A DNA stretch of 64,000 bases, from sequence record OR413575.1; one strand, given 5' to 3'. The first letter of the stretch is position 1; every line of letters begins with the position of its first letter. This document shows positions 11,538 through 20,704 of this stretch, one piece after another. Position numbers and translations under genes: made by a program. The notes under the pieces are model-generated. The model was not told the origin of the DNA, did not search any database, and saw nothing but the letters and a program-made list of their open reading frames with translations.

Positions 11538-11594
11538 TACCAAATACCCTCTAGGGCCTACGGGCCCTTTTATTTTTTGTCTGGAGAAAACAAC

Positions 11595-12758
11595 ATGCGT
11601 CCTTATGAAGAATTAGTTAAACACATCCTCATGAATGGTAAAGAGCGTGGGGATCGTACAGGTACCGGTACCGTATCTGTCTTCGGTACTAAATCGGAAT
11701 ATCACATGTTCAACGGTTTCCCGTTATTTGGTAAGCGTTCGGTTAGTTTGAAATGGATTCAGGGTGAACTCGAATGGTTGTTGGCGGGTGAAGGGAACAT
11801 CCGTGAACTGAAGAAGAAAGGAATCACTATTTGGGATGAATGGGCGCTGAAACGTGAAGACGTAATGGTCGATAGCAACGTCTGCGGACTGCGTCTGATG
11901 TTAGCGGCAACAAGTAAAGGTCTGCAACGTCCGGTGGGTAACGTATTCGAAATCGAAAAGTGGTGTAAAGAGACTGGAACTGATTTCGAGAAAATCCTGG
12001 ATTACGTAGAAGGGGATCTTGGTCCTATCTATCCGGTGCAGTGGCGTAACTTTGATGGTGTTGACCAAATCAAAGAGACTCTACGGACTTGTAAGGAACA
12101 TCCTTTCAGTCGTCGGCATTATGTATCTGCATGGAACCCTCAATACTTGCCAGATGAGCGCTTCACTCCAGAGCAGAACGTACTGAATGGTAAGATGGCA
12201 CTTGCTCCTTGCCACCATGGGTTCCAGTTCTACGTCGAAGATCTTTCTCTGAACGAACGACTGATGCACGCATTGATCATGATTCGCAAATGGGATCTGG
12301 TGCAGGTTGTACACGGTACAGGTAACCAACGTAATAACGCATTGGGTGCGCTGGGTATCTTCCGTACTCAGGATGAACGTGAAATCCATGCTATCCTGGA
12401 TGAGCGTAATGTACCGACCAAAGGTATCAGTATCGAATTCGTGATGAGATCATCTGACGTCATCCTTGGGACGCCCTACAATGTAGCCTCCTACGCTATG
12501 TTGTTAATGATGTATGCACGTATTCTGGGGTATGCACCACTACGTGTTATTCATCAGTGTGGTGACGCCCATATCTATCTGAACCATCTGGAACAGATTG
12601 ATGAAATGATGCAACGCGATACCCCTGCATTACCTCAATTATACTGGGCTGAAGATACTCCTAACGATATCGATGATCCAGCTGATTATCGTTGGGAACA
12701 TTTCGAACTCGTCGGTTACAAACCTGGTCCACGTATGGACTTCCCTATTGCTAAGTAA
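11595..12758 (+). CDS. thyA: Thymidylate synthase (ThyA type) with two insertions
   Basis: DRTGTGT, IWDEWA, LGPIYPVQWR, catalytic LAPCH, RSSDVILGTPYN and GDAHIYLNH motifs. Confidence 0.95.
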   Translation: MRPYEELVKHILMNGKERGDRTGTGTVSVFGTKSEYHMFNGFPLFGKRSVSLKWIQGELEWLLAGEGNIRELKKKGITIWDEWALKREDVMVDSNVCGLRLMLAATSKGLQRPVGNVFEIEKWCKETGTDFEKILDYVEGDLGPIYPVQWRNFDGVDQIKETLRTCKEHPFSRRHYVSAWNPQYLPDERFTPEQNVLNGKMALAPCHHGFQFYVEDLSLNERLMHALIMIRKWDLVQVVHGTGNQRNNALGALGIFRTQDEREIHAILDERNVPTKGISIEFVMRSSDVILGTPYNVASYAMLLMMYARILGYAPLRVIHQCGDAHIYLNHLEQIDEMMQRDTPALPQLYWAEDTPNDIDDPADYRWEHFELVGYKPGPRMDFPIAK

Positions 12759-13525: not shown

Positions 13526-15226
13526 ATGGAAAACGCGAAAACTCCTAAGTTCACTCCTGCAATGATCACGGCTATCAACACCCAGTACGACCCGATCGTA
13601 CGTGAAGTGTTTGACAACTTCGTTAAACGCGAAGGCCGTCCTGTATTCCACGCATGTTCTACTGAAGATCGTCGTGACTTAGCGGACATCTTCCAGACGA
13701 ACCTTCCTACCTATAATCTGGGTGAAGGAGAATGTCGTGTCTGCGCCAACTGGCTAAACGTATATGGTGACCTCGTGTGGCATGAAGCCGATGGCTCTGT
13801 CCATACCCTCTGGTCTAACTACAAAGGCCCGGAGATCTACAAATCTCTCTTCGGTACTATGGAAACCTTCGTGAAAGATGCCTACGAAGAAAGTCGTACT
13901 GAGAAAAATGACGTCGGCGTGGTAGTGTGGCACAACAACACTTCACCTGATAACCTTCCTGTATATCCTGACACCGTTAAAGTTGGTCAGGCCGTAGCAG
14001 GAGGTTTCCATCACTTCCATCTGGATTGGTCACCGGCGGTAAATTCTGGTAACTACTCAGCATCTCGTTGTCGTTCTATCATAAACGCAGCATTGAACTT
14101 TGGTTACTGGGTTACTCAGTCTCCAATGGTTCTCGATCGTATGCAAGCTGTTCTGAACTTCCTGGTACAGCAAACCGAAAATACTCACATCCGTAAATCC
14201 ATTGCGGCGTTAACTGAGTGTCTGACCGTATTCAAAGACCTCGACCGCAAGACTCTGGAATCTGATTACGTCGGCACTGTTGCATACGTACGCGGTAACG
14301 TACATCGTCTGCGTGAACATATGTACGCCATCCGTTCTGGTGCACTCAGTGTTCTTATCAAAGACACGACCACCGTTGGTGAAGTGTCTGAAGGTTCATT
14401 CCGTGAATACTGCCGTCTGACGGATCCAGATCTGTATAAGCGTGTTACGCGCGAGTTCTCTGAGAAACATCTGCGTGAAGCAGAACGTATCCTGGAGTCT
14501 ACTGATTTGGGTAAAGCATTCAAGCGTCGTTATATCCGTAAATCAGATCTCCCGTCGTTACCACACCTGTGGATTAACAACCACGTTTCTCAAGCACGTA
14601 AGCCGTTGAACATCCTCGGCGAACTGAATGTTAAATCTGAAACTAATACGGCAGATGCGTTAGGCCGTCCGAAGAAAGAAGTTAAATGCTCTCTCCAGAC
14701 GTTCATGGAGAAACACCTTCCTTCTATTAGCGATCTGTATTATAACACTCACGCTCGTCCTGATACCTACTGCGCTATTACTACGGCGGAAGATATCACG
14801 TCACCAGAAGTATTCCAATGGCCTGGTCACCTGAGTCACTGGACTTACACTCAGGGTAGCGATTGCCGTCAGTGGGGATTGCGTGCTGGTCAGGGTGTAC
14901 GTATCGCTACGATTATGCGTGGTCCTGAACATGGTAACATCGGTTGGGATGAGCGTCGTAACAAGCGTCTGGTGTTTGGTCTTGAAGAAGGTGCGCACGT
15001 AGGTGCTGGAATGACCGGTCTGTGGAAGGAATATATCAGCAAGTCTATTCCTGACTACAACAAGCTCATTAACGTCATCGCGGCGTATAATGAAAAGACG
15101 GCTCTCCCAATGGATCCGGAACAGATGGTCTTCGTATCTGCAACCGAAGGGAACATTCGCGAGCTCGTGCTTTGGGGGATGGTAGGTGACATCTGGACTC
15201 AGTTCACTATTACAAGCTGGGAATAA
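13526..15226 (+). CDS. Conserved large-phage protein of unknown function (566 aa)
   Basis: CRVC..WLNVYGDLV, FHHFH and HWTYTQGS..RQWGL motifs, recalled from a widespread uncharacterised phage family. Confidence 0.75.
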   Translation: MENAKTPKFTPAMITAINTQYDPIVREVFDNFVKREGRPVFHACSTEDRRDLADIFQTNLPTYNLGEGECRVCANWLNVYGDLVWHEADGSVHTLWSNYKGPEIYKSLFGTMETFVKDAYEESRTEKNDVGVVVWHNNTSPDNLPVYPDTVKVGQAVAGGFHHFHLDWSPAVNSGNYSASRCRSIINAALNFGYWVTQSPMVLDRMQAVLNFLVQQTENTHIRKSIAALTECLTVFKDLDRKTLESDYVGTVAYVRGNVHRLREHMYAIRSGALSVLIKDTTTVGEVSEGSFREYCRLTDPDLYKRVTREFSEKHLREAERILESTDLGKAFKRRYIRKSDLPSLPHLWINNHVSQARKPLNILGELNVKSETNTADALGRPKKEVKCSLQTFMEKHLPSISDLYYNTHARPDTYCAITTAEDITSPEVFQWPGHLSHWTYTQGSDCRQWGLRAGQGVRIATIMRGPEHGNIGWDERRNKRLVFGLEEGAHVGAGMTGLWKEYISKSIPDYNKLINVIAAYNEKTALPMDPEQMVFVSATEGNIRELVLWGMVGDIWTQFTITSWE

Positions 15227-16180: not shown

Positions 16181-16252
16181 ATTTGAGGGCTTCGGCCCTC
16201 TTTTTTGCTGTCATAATGCACGATTTTATGTAATGCTCTTTAAGGAGGGGCT

Positions 16253-17026
16253 ATGGACAAGTATATAGACACAATTGAATCCGAGTTGCTCGGTACAATT
16301 AACAAAGATAATGACCTGACTTTAAGAGATACCGATGTTTCTTTTAGTGGCTGGGTACGTGGTGAAGATAAAGTAGCTGTGTTTGTAAAAGGTCAAATGC
16401 CTTTCTACGACCGTAAGATTGTTGACTACAAACGGCGTGACTTAGCTGCATTCTTTTTAGGTATTCCGGTAGCGATTGACAAAACTAAACTATCAGCTGA
16501 TTTCACCGGTCAAGATCTGGTAGCTATTCTTAATAGCTACTGGCCAGGGCTAATTGATGTTGATGACATTAATGGCACATGGTTAGGGACTCATTTTAAT
16601 CAGAGTACTGAAACAGTAGAGATGGTAGCGGACACCGCGTCATTACGTTGGACAGGTAAAGTAACCATTTACCTCGTCACTAGCATACAAGAACTCTCTG
16701 AGATCTGGCTTAATACCCCACGTATTTATTCAGGATCTGTGACTATGCACGATGTATTAGTTTACACACGTGACTATAGTTCATACGGGAGAATGATGCA
16801 GGATATAAATGAAGAAGGTCCGGCGTTAGAAGAATTCAAAGAATACACCAACGTATTGAAAGACTTCACGTTAGCCTCTTACTACAAATTCTTTTACAAC
16901 GGTCCTGTAGATGAGATACCTGCCCCACTTACCGGGATGGGAAAGGATACGTTTAAGAACGTGTTAATACTGGTAAAAGATCTGGAGACGGCTGAAGTGC
17001 TCTATCTGCATTATGGGAGGAAGTAA
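16253..17026 (+). CDS. Putative virion structural protein
   Basis: Late TATG motif upstream (~16227); YKRRDLAAFF resembles the Y-x-R-x-D-L motif of phiKZ-like tail/baseplate proteins; coupled to the next gene. Confidence 0.55.
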   Translation: MDKYIDTIESELLGTINKDNDLTLRDTDVSFSGWVRGEDKVAVFVKGQMPFYDRKIVDYKRRDLAAFFLGIPVAIDKTKLSADFTGQDLVAILNSYWPGLIDVDDINGTWLGTHFNQSTETVEMVADTASLRWTGKVTIYLVTSIQELSEIWLNTPRIYSGSVTMHDVLVYTRDYSSYGRMMQDINEEGPALEEFKEYTNVLKDFTLASYYKFFYNGPVDEIPAPLTGMGKDTFKNVLILVKDLETAEVLYLHYGRK

Positions 17027-20000
17027 TGAATAAGCCATGGTGGGAAGAAAACCCCGATGACTATATCGACAAAATGAACAAAGGGAACATTAAGAAAGTC
17101 GATAACGATGATGTTGATATCGAGTTCCGGCAAGATGGAATTTACGCTGTAGCTAATAGTGAGCGTGTTGAAGGCGAAATGAAGTTGAACGTCGGTCAGC
17201 GCTTGATTCAGAACTTTACCGGGCAAGAAGCTCTGATCTTCACTGAAGAAAACTATAAGAACGGGAGCAAGACTAGATCCCAACTCTTAACTGAGATTCG
17301 CCGCGATACTGGGCTAGAGCTACCTGACTCCATGTTTAAGGATCTGTTCAAGATTGTCAACCCTCCAACCGGTGGGCAGCAAGCTCCTTGTTTCCCTATA
17401 GCGTTGGAGCCAAATGGTACTTGGATGGGCGGAGTGACGACCCCTTTAATCGTTGAAAACTCTTACGATATTAACTTACTAGTGGTGAAAGCTCAAAGTT
17501 ACATCGCCGACGTTTACCCCCCGGTCGAAGATCGTAATGGTCAGGTTATTATCAACACTGGTCGTGGTTATGGCTGTACTATTAAACCTACCGTACCGGG
17601 AGTTTACGATATCGGATTGAACATTAGTACATCAGGTGTTCGTATTTACCTTATGCGCTTTGAGAACTGGGGTACTTATAAGCTGGACATGACACAAGCC
17701 GGTTACCCGGTAGAACCACTTGTCTATAACTTCGGTCAGAATACCTGCCATATACTTTTCTTCAAGCAGTTCACTACAATGCGCTGGATTCAATTACCTG
17801 CCGATCTTTCTAAGCCGGGTGTTTGGAAGAAAGCTATGTCTAAATTAGCTAGCGTTGCAATGGATGATGAAAACATCTATCGGTTAATGAATGGACATGT
17901 AAATTTCCTAAACAAGAATACTGGGAAGTATGTTGACCCTAAAGTTGATCGTTTTGTAATTAATGATACTGGTGTTGTAGTGAACAACAGGCATTATACT
18001 TACAACACTCGACAGGAAGGACAACCTGATGGTGATGCCACTACTGAAGGACAGTCTATTAACATTGCGGGGTTTATTGAGGCATATCGGGCAGCTGATG
18101 GGCGTGGTAGTGCTGCGGTAGCTGCTGATTGGTTGTCTAAAGCTGAAAGACTCTATGATGCTTACATCACTGCGTTCTACGCCGGAGAACAACCACCTGA
18201 TACTCCAGCACGTTGGGCAAGTAACTGGATTGTAAACGGCAAGGCTCCTGTATTGGCACACTACCCATTGGCCCCAGCCGACGAATTCCCTACACACGGT
18301 GGATTCAAAAACATTGACGTTGAATTTAATGCCGGAATAGGTAGGATTCCTCATGGTGCTCCTTATTGGGGCGAATACCTTGATGTTGTTGGAAAGGCAT
18401 ATCGTGGTCTTGTGGGCTGGAATGCGATTAACGCTACGATATATCAGGTCAACGAAGATGGATCCGTAAACTATAATGCAAAGGGTGTAGAGTACGAAGT
18501 ACAGGGTATCTACGCATGGTCGATGGAGATCATTGAAAGCGACGGTACCAAAGTAGCTGATTTCAGTGACCCCGCTGATATTGGGATGGTCGTACTTAAA
18601 GACAAGACTGTGACCGGTACTGTCAAAATGTCATTCGCTGTTCGGTTACCTGTTGAACATGGCGGGTACATGATTCAGACTAACGAATGTCAACACAACC
18701 GACCTATTCAAGTTCCTGTTGCCAGTAAATACAAAGGTAACGCCAGTGATGCTGAACAATGGTTCTGCGAAGTGGCATATGACCTTTGGAAAATAACAGG
18801 TAATGATAAGTATCGCAAAGCCTATCTAGCATCGTTGTACACTATAATGGAATATGTGTTCGTGGATGCTAATGATAAGTTCTTCCGTCAAGTTGTTGGT
18901 AATTCTAGTCCGGATACAGACGGCATCAGTTATAACTATACTTACCCAAGCGGTGTTGATATTAAATACGATAGGGATGAGAATGGTTATATTCGGATGA
19001 GGTCTGAGGAAGCAAACGGCGTTAAAATCACCATGGAGCAAAACGCTATATGGTTCTACGTCGATAACGATTCCGTTCTCCGGGTGACTTATAAAGGTGT
19101 TGATGATGCAGGACGCGCTATGGGTGCTACTGCCGTATTGATACTTAGTCCTGATAAGTCAGATGAGAAGCGTACTACATACACCTTCCACTTACCTGCT
19201 GGTAGCGAAGAGATGAGTGCTATTGACTTACCACTTAATTCTATCGTTAAGCCAGTTGAACCTAATCGTGGGTTGTTAATCAGTCAAAATGACGTAACTT
19301 GGCATGGCGGGTGTAATATAACAACTGTTCAGGACGGTGGTCCAGCACCAGGTCAAATTAGTACAGTGATGATGGCTAATGCTATCGAGGGAGAAGAACT
19401 GTCTTTCTCTTGCAGAATTAGTTATCCGCAGACCATCCGGAAGGTTCGTTACTTCAGTACTTTCGATGCCAACTTCCGTATGGAAGATACTAACGGGTGG
19501 CGTTGGTGGGTTATGTTACCTGCTGGTCCTGATTGGCAGACTAAGGATATCTTAGACAATGAATGGAAGTTATCAGCATATCAACCTAATCACCCCGAGG
19601 CAACGAGCACACCTTCAATGCCTGATTGGGCAAGCCCTGATGACGAGTTCACTATCCTAAGAGGTGACGGTGTTAACTTGGTAAGCGACAGGTTTAGTAT
19701 TTTCGGATTGAACGAACTCCCTTCGGAGTACGGTATTCAACCTGGGTATACAATGTTGTTTAACCTTACGTTTGCTATGGAAGGTACTGGCACTGCATAT
19801 ATGGGCGACTGCACTATCATAGGCGCTCGTAATGATGCGTTACCTTACACACCTGGCGTAATACCATTCAGTAACAACAACATCCCGGATGCACCTACGT
19901 TTGACTCTTGGCGTGGACAACCTTACCCCGGTTATCAGTATCCGTTCTTCTATTGCTATCAAACTCTTGAAGAGAACCCTGATCGTGATTTGATGATTAA

Positions 20001-20655
20001 AAACGTCATTGATTTCTGGTGGGATAGTCAACAATGGTATCACGATAAGTTTGGTGTACTGGGCCCTGGTGCATCGGCATTTGTTTGGGATCGTTGGGAT
20101 AAACCTGCTAATGAAGAACCTAACACATGGACAATGTGGCACTTCGGTGATTCGGAAGCGTGGTCTGGTTATCAGCCCCGTGCGTTCTACGGTGCGGTGA
20201 TGATGCACAGCGTAATGAAGGAAGAAGGTTTTGATATTCCTCCTAAATTAACTGAATACATTACTAACTGGCTAACCTACCTACAAGACTTTGTTTCCAC
20301 TAACAAAGTTGTCCCTACCGAATTCCCTATGGATAAAGCTCCCGTTCCTATCGAGAATGACTTTACCGGGCACATGTCAGGATTATACTTGGCAGGTATC
20401 AGTAGAGCTTATCTATCCGGTATTAGGGTACCTGGCCATATAACGTTAGCTAAACTTGTCTACGATGAGATCCTAGCTAACTATATCCAGAATCCTGAGA
20501 ACCCAGATACGATGAACGGCGGATGGAGTCCGTGGGGTGACCCAGGTAACAATGGCGCGAATGGTATGTTCTTCGGCTTTTGGGCTGGTGAACTACTGAG
20601 AGGACTGGGCTGGTACCAACGACTTATCCAGTATATGTTTATGGACGAGGCATAA
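17026..20655 (+). CDS. Large putative virion protein with split GH8-like glycoside hydrolase domain
   Basis: ATTEGQS matches the GH8 T-S-EGQ catalytic-Glu motif; GNASDAEQWF resembles the GH8 A[ST]D[AG]D signature; inserted beta-rich segments. Confidence 0.65.
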   Translation: MNKPWWEENPDDYIDKMNKGNIKKVDNDDVDIEFRQDGIYAVANSERVEGEMKLNVGQRLIQNFTGQEALIFTEENYKNGSKTRSQLLTEIRRDTGLELPDSMFKDLFKIVNPPTGGQQAPCFPIALEPNGTWMGGVTTPLIVENSYDINLLVVKAQSYIADVYPPVEDRNGQVIINTGRGYGCTIKPTVPGVYDIGLNISTSGVRIYLMRFENWGTYKLDMTQAGYPVEPLVYNFGQNTCHILFFKQFTTMRWIQLPADLSKPGVWKKAMSKLASVAMDDENIYRLMNGHVNFLNKNTGKYVDPKVDRFVINDTGVVVNNRHYTYNTRQEGQPDGDATTEGQSINIAGFIEAYRAADGRGSAAVAADWLSKAERLYDAYITAFYAGEQPPDTPARWASNWIVNGKAPVLAHYPLAPADEFPTHGGFKNIDVEFNAGIGRIPHGAPYWGEYLDVVGKAYRGLVGWNAINATIYQVNEDGSVNYNAKGVEYEVQGIYAWSMEIIESDGTKVADFSDPADIGMVVLKDKTVTGTVKMSFAVRLPVEHGGYMIQTNECQHNRPIQVPVASKYKGNASDAEQWFCEVAYDLWKITGNDKYRKAYLASLYTIMEYVFVDANDKFFRQVVGNSSPDTDGISYNYTYPSGVDIKYDRDENGYIRMRSEEANGVKITMEQNAIWFYVDNDSVLRVTYKGVDDAGRAMGATAVLILSPDKSDEKRTTYTFHLPAGSEEMSAIDLPLNSIVKPVEPNRGLLISQNDVTWHGGCNITTVQDGGPAPGQISTVMMANAIEGEELSFSCRISYPQTIRKVRYFSTFDANFRMEDTNGWRWWVMLPAGPDWQTKDILDNEWKLSAYQPNHPEATSTPSMPDWASPDDEFTILRGDGVNLVSDRFSIFGLNELPSEYGIQPGYTMLFNLTFAMEGTGTAYMGDCTIIGARNDALPYTPGVIPFSNNNIPDAPTFDSWRGQPYPGYQYPFFYCYQTLEENPDRDLMIKNVIDFWWDSQQWYHDKFGVLGPGASAFVWDRWDKPANEEPNTWTMWHFGDSEAWSGYQPRAFYGAVMMHSVMKEEGFDIPPKLTEYITNWLTYLQDFVSTNKVVPTEFPMDKAPVPIENDFTGHMSGLYLAGISRAYLSGIRVPGHITLAKLVYDEILANYIQNPENPDTMNGGWSPWGDPGNNGANGMFFGFWAGELLRGLGWYQRLIQYMFMDEA

Positions 20656-20704
20656 CAGAGAGGGGCACTGGCCCCTCTCTTATGCTCTTTCTAACTTTAC
20701 AATG

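Follow-up and report, generated by a model that had tools for sequence, protein, structure and literature searches.

A phage tail protein family with a predicted split (alpha/alpha)6 glycosidase barrel and a GH8-like acid motif, seen from Salmonella jumbo phage SPLA10

The genome of the Salmonella jumbo phage SPLA10 (OR413575.1; 210,197 bp), which has been grouped with the phiKZ-like jumbo phages (PMC10949491), encodes a 1209-aa protein whose 940-residue core is predicted to fold into an (alpha/alpha)6 glycosidase barrel assembled from three separated blocks of sequence. We analyzed this protein and its surroundings in a 64,000-nt stretch of the record, hereafter termed the window, in which the gene occupies positions 17026..20655; it and all other window features described below lie on the plus strand. 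In the record, this gene is labeled 'tail protein' and its direct upstream neighbor 'virion structural protein'. On balance, we consider it probable that the protein is a virion-borne, glycan-cleaving (alpha/alpha)6 barrel enzyme with residues resembling those of glycoside hydrolase family 8 (GH8), for which bacterial cellulose is the best candidate substrate. The analysis establishes the open reading frame, family membership, predicted fold, residue conservation and operon structure; we infer catalysis, the roles of individual residues, the substrate and the place on the SPLA10 particle.

An earlier note on this DNA, made from its sequence alone, had proposed a virion-mounted glycanase with a split GH8-type barrel, based on two short motifs. 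The open reading frame at 17026..20655 indeed runs uninterrupted through 1209 aa, and both motifs lie exactly where the note had placed them: the GAA codon of Glu341 at 18046-18048, within DATTEGQS, and the GAT codon of Asp575 at 18748-18750, within GNASDAEQWF, 234 residues further on. Residues 274-1198 match the profile of PHROG 2871 'tail protein' at profile positions 113-1036 (E 9.4e-290). Members of this family are typically 920-950 aa long, and we therefore regard the 940-residue core as its unit.

To predict the fold, we modeled residues 270-1209 with AlphaFold2 from a 59-sequence family alignment (protein number = model number + 269). The resulting model has a mean pLDDT (predicted local distance difference test score) of 85.6 and a pTM (predicted template modeling score) of 0.83. 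Its eleven long helices fall into three blocks (model 2-115, 305-342 and 718-939), separated by a beta-rich block (model 117-300) and a multi-sandwich block (model 345-700). The first helical block, residues 274-385 (17845..18180), supplies barrel helices 1-3 (model 2-28, 71-90 and 94-115) together with an NNRH loop and the TTEGQ motif. Residues 570-613 (18733..18864) form helices 4-5 (model 305-322 and 325-342) and carry the motif N-A-S-D-A-E, while residues 966-1209 (19921..20652) complete the barrel with helices 6-11 (model 718-939) and the motifs PYPGYQYP, W-x-R-W-D, W-S-G-Y-Q-P-R, T-G-H-M and F-W-A-G-E. Insert 1, of ~185 residues (386-569; 18181..18732; model strands 133-288, pLDDT mostly >85), is placed between helices 3 and 4; insert 2, of ~350 residues (614-965; 18865..19920; model strands 365-663), is placed between helices 5 and 6 and comprises several beta-sandwich domains, with pLDDT dropping at model 480-530 and 600-620.

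The (alpha/alpha)6 barrel and the large insertion between its two motifs, both anticipated in the earlier note, are thus what the model predicts, with the helices parted by beta-rich insertions. Its view that the protein differs in class from the beta-helix tailspikes also holds, as the model consists of a helical barrel and beta-sandwiches and contains no beta-helix. A Trp-rich beta region followed by a helical C-terminal part fared less uniformly: the helical part is there, but Trp makes up 5.3% of the C-terminal helices compared to 2.6-2.7% of the beta regions.

Comparison with solved structures was performed with VIA-align, a gap-tolerant structure search over 48,161 chains for which a background of ~14 is quoted for helical models. 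More than 30 solved six-hairpin enzymes aligned at Z 21-29, with alignments spanning model ~6-940 and nearly whole target chains. The best match was a GH126 enzyme (3ren; Z 29.1, rmsd (root-mean-square deviation) 2.9, 331 of 332 residues), followed by YteR of GH105 (Z 29.0), GH76 (Z 27.0), GH88 (Z 25.8) and the GH8 cellulase CelA (Z 24.7); other GH8 enzymes, BcsZ-type included, reached Z 20.9-24.4, the upper two at 24.4 and 23.9. Because six-hairpin enzymes align across model ~6-940 at scores far above background, the description of the core as a split barrel is correct, and its assignment to the six-hairpin (alpha/alpha)6 glycosidase fold is well supported by the model. Two other searches were set aside: Foldseek with the whole model returned Vip3/Cry toxins and sandwiches resembling carbohydrate-binding modules (CBMs) at TM (template modeling) scores <=0.13, which reflect the inserted beta domains only, and the best ESM Atlas score, 0.82, lies in the noise range and was taken merely as a hint of barrels of the GH9 and C5-epimerase type.

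The candidate active-site residues are among the best conserved of the family. In the 59-sequence alignment, Asp575 and Glu577 (codon 18754-18756) show no variation and T-T-E-G-Q is conserved to 90% or more, such that the two motifs of the earlier note are not chance strings but hold the family's best conserved acidic residues. Glu341, Gln343, Asp575 and Glu577 are kept in the most distant homologs that we retrieved, i.e., those of rV5-like phages (26% identity), Vibrio phages, Kolesnikvirus, Seoulvirus and Rosemountvirus, in variants such as M-H-E-S-Q and L-D-G-E-E (rV5-like), T-T-E-T-Q (Vibrio) and P-S-E-S-Q (Salmonella phage SPLA2). In the model, Glu341 starts barrel helix 2 and Asp575 starts barrel helix 4. 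More generally, Glu341, Asp575, Glu577, Asp1025 and Glu1189 are invariant or near-invariant and sit at N-termini of helices after long loops, as do the other invariant polar clusters (NNRH, PYPGYQYP, W-x-R-W-D, W-S-G-Y-Q-P-R, T-G-H-M and F-W-A-G-E). Since all of these clusters occupy such positions, the topology suggests that they gather on one face of the barrel, the active-site side. Insert 1 is conserved like the barrel itself, with 29 of its 184 positions invariant, and probably belongs to the catalytic domain of the model as a lid or cleft wall. The middle of insert 2 (residues 673-898) is the most variable region of the family (5 of 226 positions invariant), which from the alignment makes it a candidate for glycan binding or specificity; one relative shows a weak CBM_11 match.

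How close the protein stands to GH8 was examined with an alignment of 17 GH8 sequences, which combined E. coli BcsZ with ten diverse GH8 genes from plasmids and six relatives from the database. In BcsZ the corresponding residues are Glu55 (T-T-S-E-G-Q) and Asp116 (S-A-S-D-G-D). With hhalign, the N-terminal barrel block placed G-V-V-V-N...TTEGQS on BcsZ G-R-V-I-D...TTSEGQS, and thereby Glu341 on Glu55 (P 0.009-0.014), and BcsZ ranked first for this block in a decoy test with 16 unrelated E. coli proteins. The putative acid is thus found in a GH8 context, conserved and at the start of model helix 71-90. The helix 4-5 block placed ASDAE on SASDGD, i.e., Asp575 on Asp116 (P 0.078), and in local mode a profile of the barrel alone matched GH8 best in this same region (P 0.03, probability 1.6%).

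Several results weigh against the GH8-like, cellulose-directed enzyme that we favor, beginning with family membership itself. The Pfam GH8 model PF01270 gave no match up to E 10 with the whole protein, six fragments of it and 52 relatives, although it detects E. coli BcsZ at 6e-162, and searches of Pfam, NCBIfam and PDB sequences with the 1209-aa protein and six fragments returned nothing usable. The hhalign score of the Asp-motif block was not better than that of decoys, the C-terminal segments aligned out of register on the wrong GH8 hairpins, which indicates that similarity at the level of hairpins is generic, and probabilities against GH8 reached only 1-5%. In global mode, the barrel-only profile and the 17-sequence alignment failed to align. 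The PROSITE-type GH8 signature reads A-[ST]-D-[AG]-D-x(2)-[IM]-A-x-[SA]-[LIVM]-[LIVMG]-x-A-x(3)-[FW]; only A-S-D-A fits this pattern, position 5 being Glu and positions 8, 9, 11 and 12 differing as well. Candidates for the catalytic base and for the tyrosine of the N-P-S-Y motif are found at Tyr967/Tyr970, Asp1025 and Glu1189, of which Asp1025 is lost in rV5-like members, in a C-terminal region whose alignment is out of register. The placing of Glu341 and Asp575 in one cleft would follow from the topology of the model only. Of the earlier claim of a GH8-type barrel, the fold and the GH8-like acid motif therefore stand, whereas formal membership, with Pfam silent and hhalign probabilities <5%, does not. 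We read the protein as having a GH8-like catalytic-acid region, as judged by alignment, in a compatible predicted architecture, with GH8 membership not proven. Formal membership fails, and in shape GH126, GH105 and GH76 stand just as near. PHROG 2871 is best treated as a six-hairpin family of its own.

The same results bear on the strongest alternative, that the protein has this fold and place on the virion but a chemistry other than that of GH8, acting on another glycan such as lipopolysaccharide (LPS) core or O-antigen, enterobacterial common antigen (ECA)/NGR glycan, poly-N-acetylglucosamine or an acidic exopolysaccharide, perhaps in the manner of the GH105/GH88 unsaturated uronyl hydrolases, the GH76 mannanases or GH126. 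We judge this rather unlikely. Structures of GH126, GH105, GH76 and GH88 match as well as or better than GH8 (Z 25-29 compared to 21-25), and sequence matches below threshold point to the six-hairpin families GH76, GH127, GH47 and C5-epimerase but never to GH8, GH76 being the sole match of the family profile against the PDB (E 0.16). The many invariant Arg and His residues of the family could indicate an anionic substrate. On the other hand, the adjacent Asp-Asp pair of GH76 is absent here; the conserved acids are instead one lone Glu, in [ST]-E-[GST]-Q, plus the pair D-x-E, and it is BcsZ that comes out on top of the 16 E. coli proteins for the segment around the Glu.

Evidence on the substrate divides along similar lines. 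Salmonella phage SPLA2, in which transposon inactivation of the Salmonella cellulose-synthesis genes lowers susceptibility and for which the authors name cellulose as receptor (PMC10949491), encodes a homolog with 37% identity. Erwinia phage M7, stated to require cellulose in a source that refers partly to an unpublished observation (PMC13101476), encodes the homolog gp042. In neither publication is cellulose dependence tied to the PHROG 2871 protein. Two homolog-bearing lineages are independently reported as cellulose-dependent, which argues against the other glycans, as does the spread of the family: identities of ~40% across phages of many host genera speak for a target shared by all of these hosts, and cellulose fits this better than ECA or any O-antigen. 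By contrast, where the receptor of a homolog-bearing phage has been studied genetically, it is mostly LPS or a wecB-linked glycan and not cellulose. SPLA11 is assigned to LPS (PMC10949491), and its module is 94.8% identical in nucleotide sequence to that of SPLA2; as the distal tail fibers of the two phages are equally similar (95.5%), this comparison decides nothing between cellulose and LPS. The Seoulviruses SPLA1a and SPLA5c are likewise assigned to LPS (PMC10949491), the M7 relative phiEa21-4 to LPS and OmpA, and rV5- and phi92-like phages depend on the wecB-linked ECA/NGR glycan. Moreover, the rV5- and phi92-like phages of the BASEL collection have E. coli K-12 as their isolation host, a strain in which bcsQ is a pseudogene. 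With homologs present in phages linked to LPS and OmpA, to wecB and to K-12, cellulose is no general requirement of the phages that carry the protein and could at most serve as a facultative first receptor or form a barrier as part of the matrix. The cellulose substrate suggested earlier accordingly gains from the literature on SPLA2 and M7, while the substrate as such is inferred: most likely the target is a conserved host surface glycan, for which the evidence, although circumstantial, makes bacterial cellulose the best candidate.

A second alternative takes the barrel to be a catalytically silent scaffold, either a structural component of baseplate or fiber or a lectin-like adhesin that binds glycans without cleaving them. 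In the literature and databases searched, no activity is on record for any family member, the GH8 signature is unmet past A-S-D-A, the catalytic base is not alignable, and conservation in phages of the cellulose-free K-12 is what a structural part would display. Yet the acidic and polar helix N-termini stay invariant down to 26% identity and insert 1 above the barrel is equally conserved; because both features are typical of a maintained active site, we favor one here. Scaffolds normally keep their hydrophobic cores rather than a constellation of Glu/Asp/Glu/His/Arg, and we consider a silent barrel improbable.

Regarding the location of the protein, several relatives place it on the virion. 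Mass spectrometry of rV5 particles detected gp42 (PMC3606486), a full-length homolog (27% identity, E 6e-80). Baseplate genes precede the gene in rV5-like, phi92-like, Kolesnikvirus and Vibrio phages, and in Rosemountvirus it lies between neck and sheath genes. Some family members are fused to additional domains: an N-terminal Tail_P2_I domain, an N-terminal DUF7941 fragment (P0013, P0010), a C-terminal GP4 gp77 fiber-tail adaptor or a C-terminal non-contractile-tail-sheath TIM barrel. Individual examples are P0035 (1097 aa), with an N-terminal P2 gpI baseplate domain, P0062 (1161 aa), with a C-terminal GP4 gp77 fiber-tail adaptor, and P0009 (1795 aa), in which the C-terminal non-contractile-tail-sheath TIM barrel is a second putative glycosidase. 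The virion mounting proposed earlier is therefore backed by PHROG and record annotation, rV5 mass spectrometry and anchor-domain fusions; for the SPLA10 particle itself the mounting is predicted by analogy to these relatives. That the protein is instead an intracellular or lysis-associated polysaccharide enzyme, its 'tail protein' label inherited from distant relatives, would suit a gene situated among nucleotide-metabolism and small unknown genes, away from the baseplate genes, but is highly improbable given its predicted co-transcription with the DUF7941/'virion structural protein' gene, the homolog in rV5 virions, the fusions to baseplate and collar anchors and an N-terminus that, by eye, has no signal peptide-like sequence. 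Structural genes are scattered in jumbo phages.

PHROG 2871 is widespread. By tblastn, 528 of 50,697 phage records contain a homolog, and a protein database contains 297 clusters. Identities of ~40% are reached in Phapecoctavirus and phi92-like phages; further carriers are PBECO4-like jumbo phages, Rosemountvirus, Aeromonas Atoyac phages, Seoulvirus, Kolesnikvirus and other Ounavirinae, rV5-like phages (26%) and Vibrio phages. Hosts comprise Enterobacterales (Salmonella, Erwinia), Pseudomonas, Vibrio, Aeromonas, Shewanella and Gluconobacter. Three host labels look doubtful: PP583539 ('Listeria phage 220426122051') is ~97% identical to Salmonella/E. coli Rosemountviruses across the compared module, and MG065661 ('Campylobacter phage C9') and OR584014 ('Pseudomonas phage PsgM04F') agree, both in size and in tail-protein identity, with adjacent records of rV5-like and Phapecoctavirus coliphages. 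A solved structure or measured activity of any member was not found in the literature and databases searched.

In six phage lineages, a small gene directly precedes the homolog (L015:2346-3014, L019:3504-3977, L017:3501-4235, L016:2480-3007, L014:11792-12415 and L018:2470-2943). The rV5-like, phi92-like, Kolesnikvirus, Vibrio and Rosemountvirus phages all show this arrangement. The products share a C-terminal domain of ~100 aa (phrog_9017/7760/22179/27998) behind variable N-termini, and the rV5-like partner adds a tailspike N-terminal anchor domain (Tail_spike_N). The small gene and the homolog form a conserved two-gene module; in SPLA10 the partner is replaced by DUF7941. In some Rosemountvirus records (MN158218, MT768059 and OM313460), a gene of the module is labeled 'diguanylate cyclase/phosphodiesterase'. 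Pfam found no such domain in the small gene of SPLA2, and the label is probably an annotation artifact, albeit one that deserves mention as cyclic di-GMP controls cellulose synthesis. In the phi92-like Escherichia phage JohannJBalmer (L019:3504-6853), a 157-aa partner (phrog_9017) and a 958-aa homolog stand right after the sheath-initiator gene; by colinearity, the pair corresponds to phi92 gp140 and gp141, and the homolog bas62_0025 to gp141. A 2026 cryo-electron microscopy paper on phi92 leaves the density 'fiber II' unassigned and never mentions gp141. As the screen of that study sought fiber-like folds, it would miss a globular barrel enzyme.

What sets SPLA10 apart is its N-terminal domain, residues 1-273 (17026..17844), which is lineage-specific and the presumed virion anchor. 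Searches of Pfam, PHROG and PDB sequences gave no match to it, and a word search returned nothing beyond its own 99% cluster; the domain shares 34% identity with the N-terminus of P0003, encoded on a syntenic 83-kb metagenomic jumbo-phage contig. This contig carries the same neighborhood, with a DUF7941 gene paired to a 1203-aa gene; thymidylate synthase lies on the upstream side, and a GH19 endolysin, a tail tube and a phiKZ-type sheath lie on the downstream side. In SPLA10, the 257-aa DUF7941 protein encoded at 16253..17026 matches PF25613 (E 3e-17) and PHROG 1037 'virion structural protein', and its phage homologs were found only in the jumbo phages PCH45, Goslar and LucasX. The coupling of the two genes asserted in the earlier note is real: the TAA stop of the DUF7941 gene overlaps the ATG of the 1209-aa gene (TAATG), preceded by a Shine-Dalgarno-like GGGAGG at 17015..17020, 5 nt ahead of the ATG at 17026. 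A strong terminator-like hairpin at 16185..16200 (6-bp GC-rich stem followed by a T run) closes the preceding unit, and a second strong one at 20657..20680 (10-bp stem with 7 GC pairs) comes immediately past the stop codon. Owing to these bracketing hairpins and the TAATG overlap, 16253-20655 looks like a single two-gene transcription unit.

Other features of this region were recorded in passing. The word ATGCTCTTT follows both bracketing hairpins (16232-16241 and 20681-20690). As a promoter word it shows no enrichment across the window (3 matches compared to 4.7 expected, one mismatch allowed), and it may be due to chance or be a piece of a phage promoter or transcript start. Upstream, an open reading frame at 11577-12758 encodes a thymidylate synthase of 393 aa, which seems to hold an insertion of ~100 residues because PHROG profile positions 30-307 stretch across its residues 4-392. 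Two genes ahead of the tail-protein unit, a 566-aa open reading frame at 13526-15226 has PHROG 1735 (unknown function, E 1e-32) as its sole match and no Pfam family.

Taken as a mechanism, our preferred explanation would run as follows. The private 273-residue N-terminal domain, probably together with the co-transcribed DUF7941 protein, would fix the protein to the periphery of tail or baseplate. Beyond it, the 940-residue core would form a glycoside-hydrolase-type barrel from its three sequence blocks, with the conserved beta-rich lid (insert 1) and the variable multi-sandwich arm (insert 2) extending from two of the long loops on the side of the active site. Within T-T-E-G-Q, Glu341 would serve as general acid, and Asp575 and Glu577 in A-S-D-A-E may grip or distort the sugar where it is cleaved, comparable to Glu55 and Asp116 of BcsZ. 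Such an enzyme would attach to and cleave a conserved beta-glycan on the host surface, with bacterial (phosphoethanolamine-)cellulose as the best candidate, and thereby aid adsorption and passage through the matrix.

We also put forward, more tentatively and as a possibility we ourselves doubt, a bolder proposal: that PHROG 2871 represents a glycoside hydrolase family not yet described, which branched off remotely and with heavy elaboration from the inverting beta-glucanases of GH8/GH48/GH126 type, that it serves as a virion-borne device to recognize and cut cellulose and so explains the cellulose requirement of the Kolesnikvirus M7 and the Rosemountvirus SPLA2, that the module is carried by >500 sequenced phages ranging from 41-kb myoviruses to nucleus-forming jumbo phages, and that it may be the 'fiber II' density of phi92-like phages.

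About one in 100 phage genome records carries the module, and some of these phages serve, or have been suggested, for the biocontrol of Salmonella, E. coli O157 and Erwinia. Were the protein an active cellulase-type enzyme, it would give a name to the receptor-binding or matrix-degrading protein behind the recently recognized cellulose dependence of some phages, and would add a class of virion depolymerases other than beta-helix proteins as well as a ready-made biofilm-matrix enzyme. The family also gives structural biologists a specific protein to consider for the baseplate density that is still unassigned in rV5- and phi92-like phages. Even as an ordinary glycosidase-like tail protein, it offers a well-defined target with three sites for point mutants.

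The closest comparisons are with relatives in the same family. rV5 gp42, the phi92-like bas62_0025, M7 gp042, the 'tail protein' of Rosemountvirus and the 'glycosyl hydrolase' of Seoulvirus are homologous over the full 940-residue core (26-40% identity, E down to 0), share its motifs and, like the SPLA10 gene, have a small co-oriented gene directly upstream. SPLA10 and its jumbo-phage kin differ by their private 273-residue N-terminal domain and by a DUF7941 partner in place of the protein with the phrog_9017/7760 domain. The idea of a glycosidase is not new in general, as BASEL annotators had flagged orthologs as 'lateral tail fiber protein with glycosidase domains'. Absent from the literature and databases searched are the split six-hairpin architecture, the Glu/Asp/Glu set with a GH8-like acid motif and the coincidence with cellulose-dependent phages.

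Among bacterial enzymes, the GH8 cellulases E. coli BcsZ and Clostridium thermocellum CelA (1cem) have in common with the SPLA10 protein the (alpha/alpha)6 barrel, superposed for CelA over 326 residues, in which the Glu of [ST]-E-G-Q opens barrel helix 2 and the Asp of A-[ST]-D-[AG]-x opens helix 4. The two motifs are 61 residues apart in GH8 and 234 in SPLA10 because of the conserved beta-rich insert, and SPLA10 adds the second insert of ~350 residues. The fifth signature residue is Asp in GH8 and Glu in SPLA10, and BcsZ is periplasmic whereas the phage protein is presumably virion-mounted. The best structural match, GH126 CPF_2247 of Clostridium perfringens (3ren), is reportedly GH8- and GH48-like in its active site, but it has no detectable similarity in sequence (7% identity when superposed). 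It lacks inserts, being one compact domain, and does not come from a phage. GH48 and GH8 belong to the same clan.

Two phage systems are instructive in this respect. Erwinia phage S6 encodes gp095, a GH5 enzyme active on carboxymethylcellulose, and gp094, predicted to be GH48-like (PMC9544554). As in the scenario favored here, these are phage-encoded glycosidases tied to cellulose-dependent infection, and GH48 enzymes are (alpha/alpha)6 barrels too; S6, however, is a podovirus of the Schitoviridae, its enzymes belong to other families with no homology to PHROG 2871 seen, and gp095 is biochemically proven. The beta-helix tailspikes of P22 and CBA120 resemble the proposed arrangement in being virion-borne and modular, with an N-terminal anchor and an enzymatic body for crossing surface glycans. 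They are, in contrast, trimers of right-handed beta-helices that are swapped with host serotype, whereas the core of the SPLA10 family is conserved across host genera.

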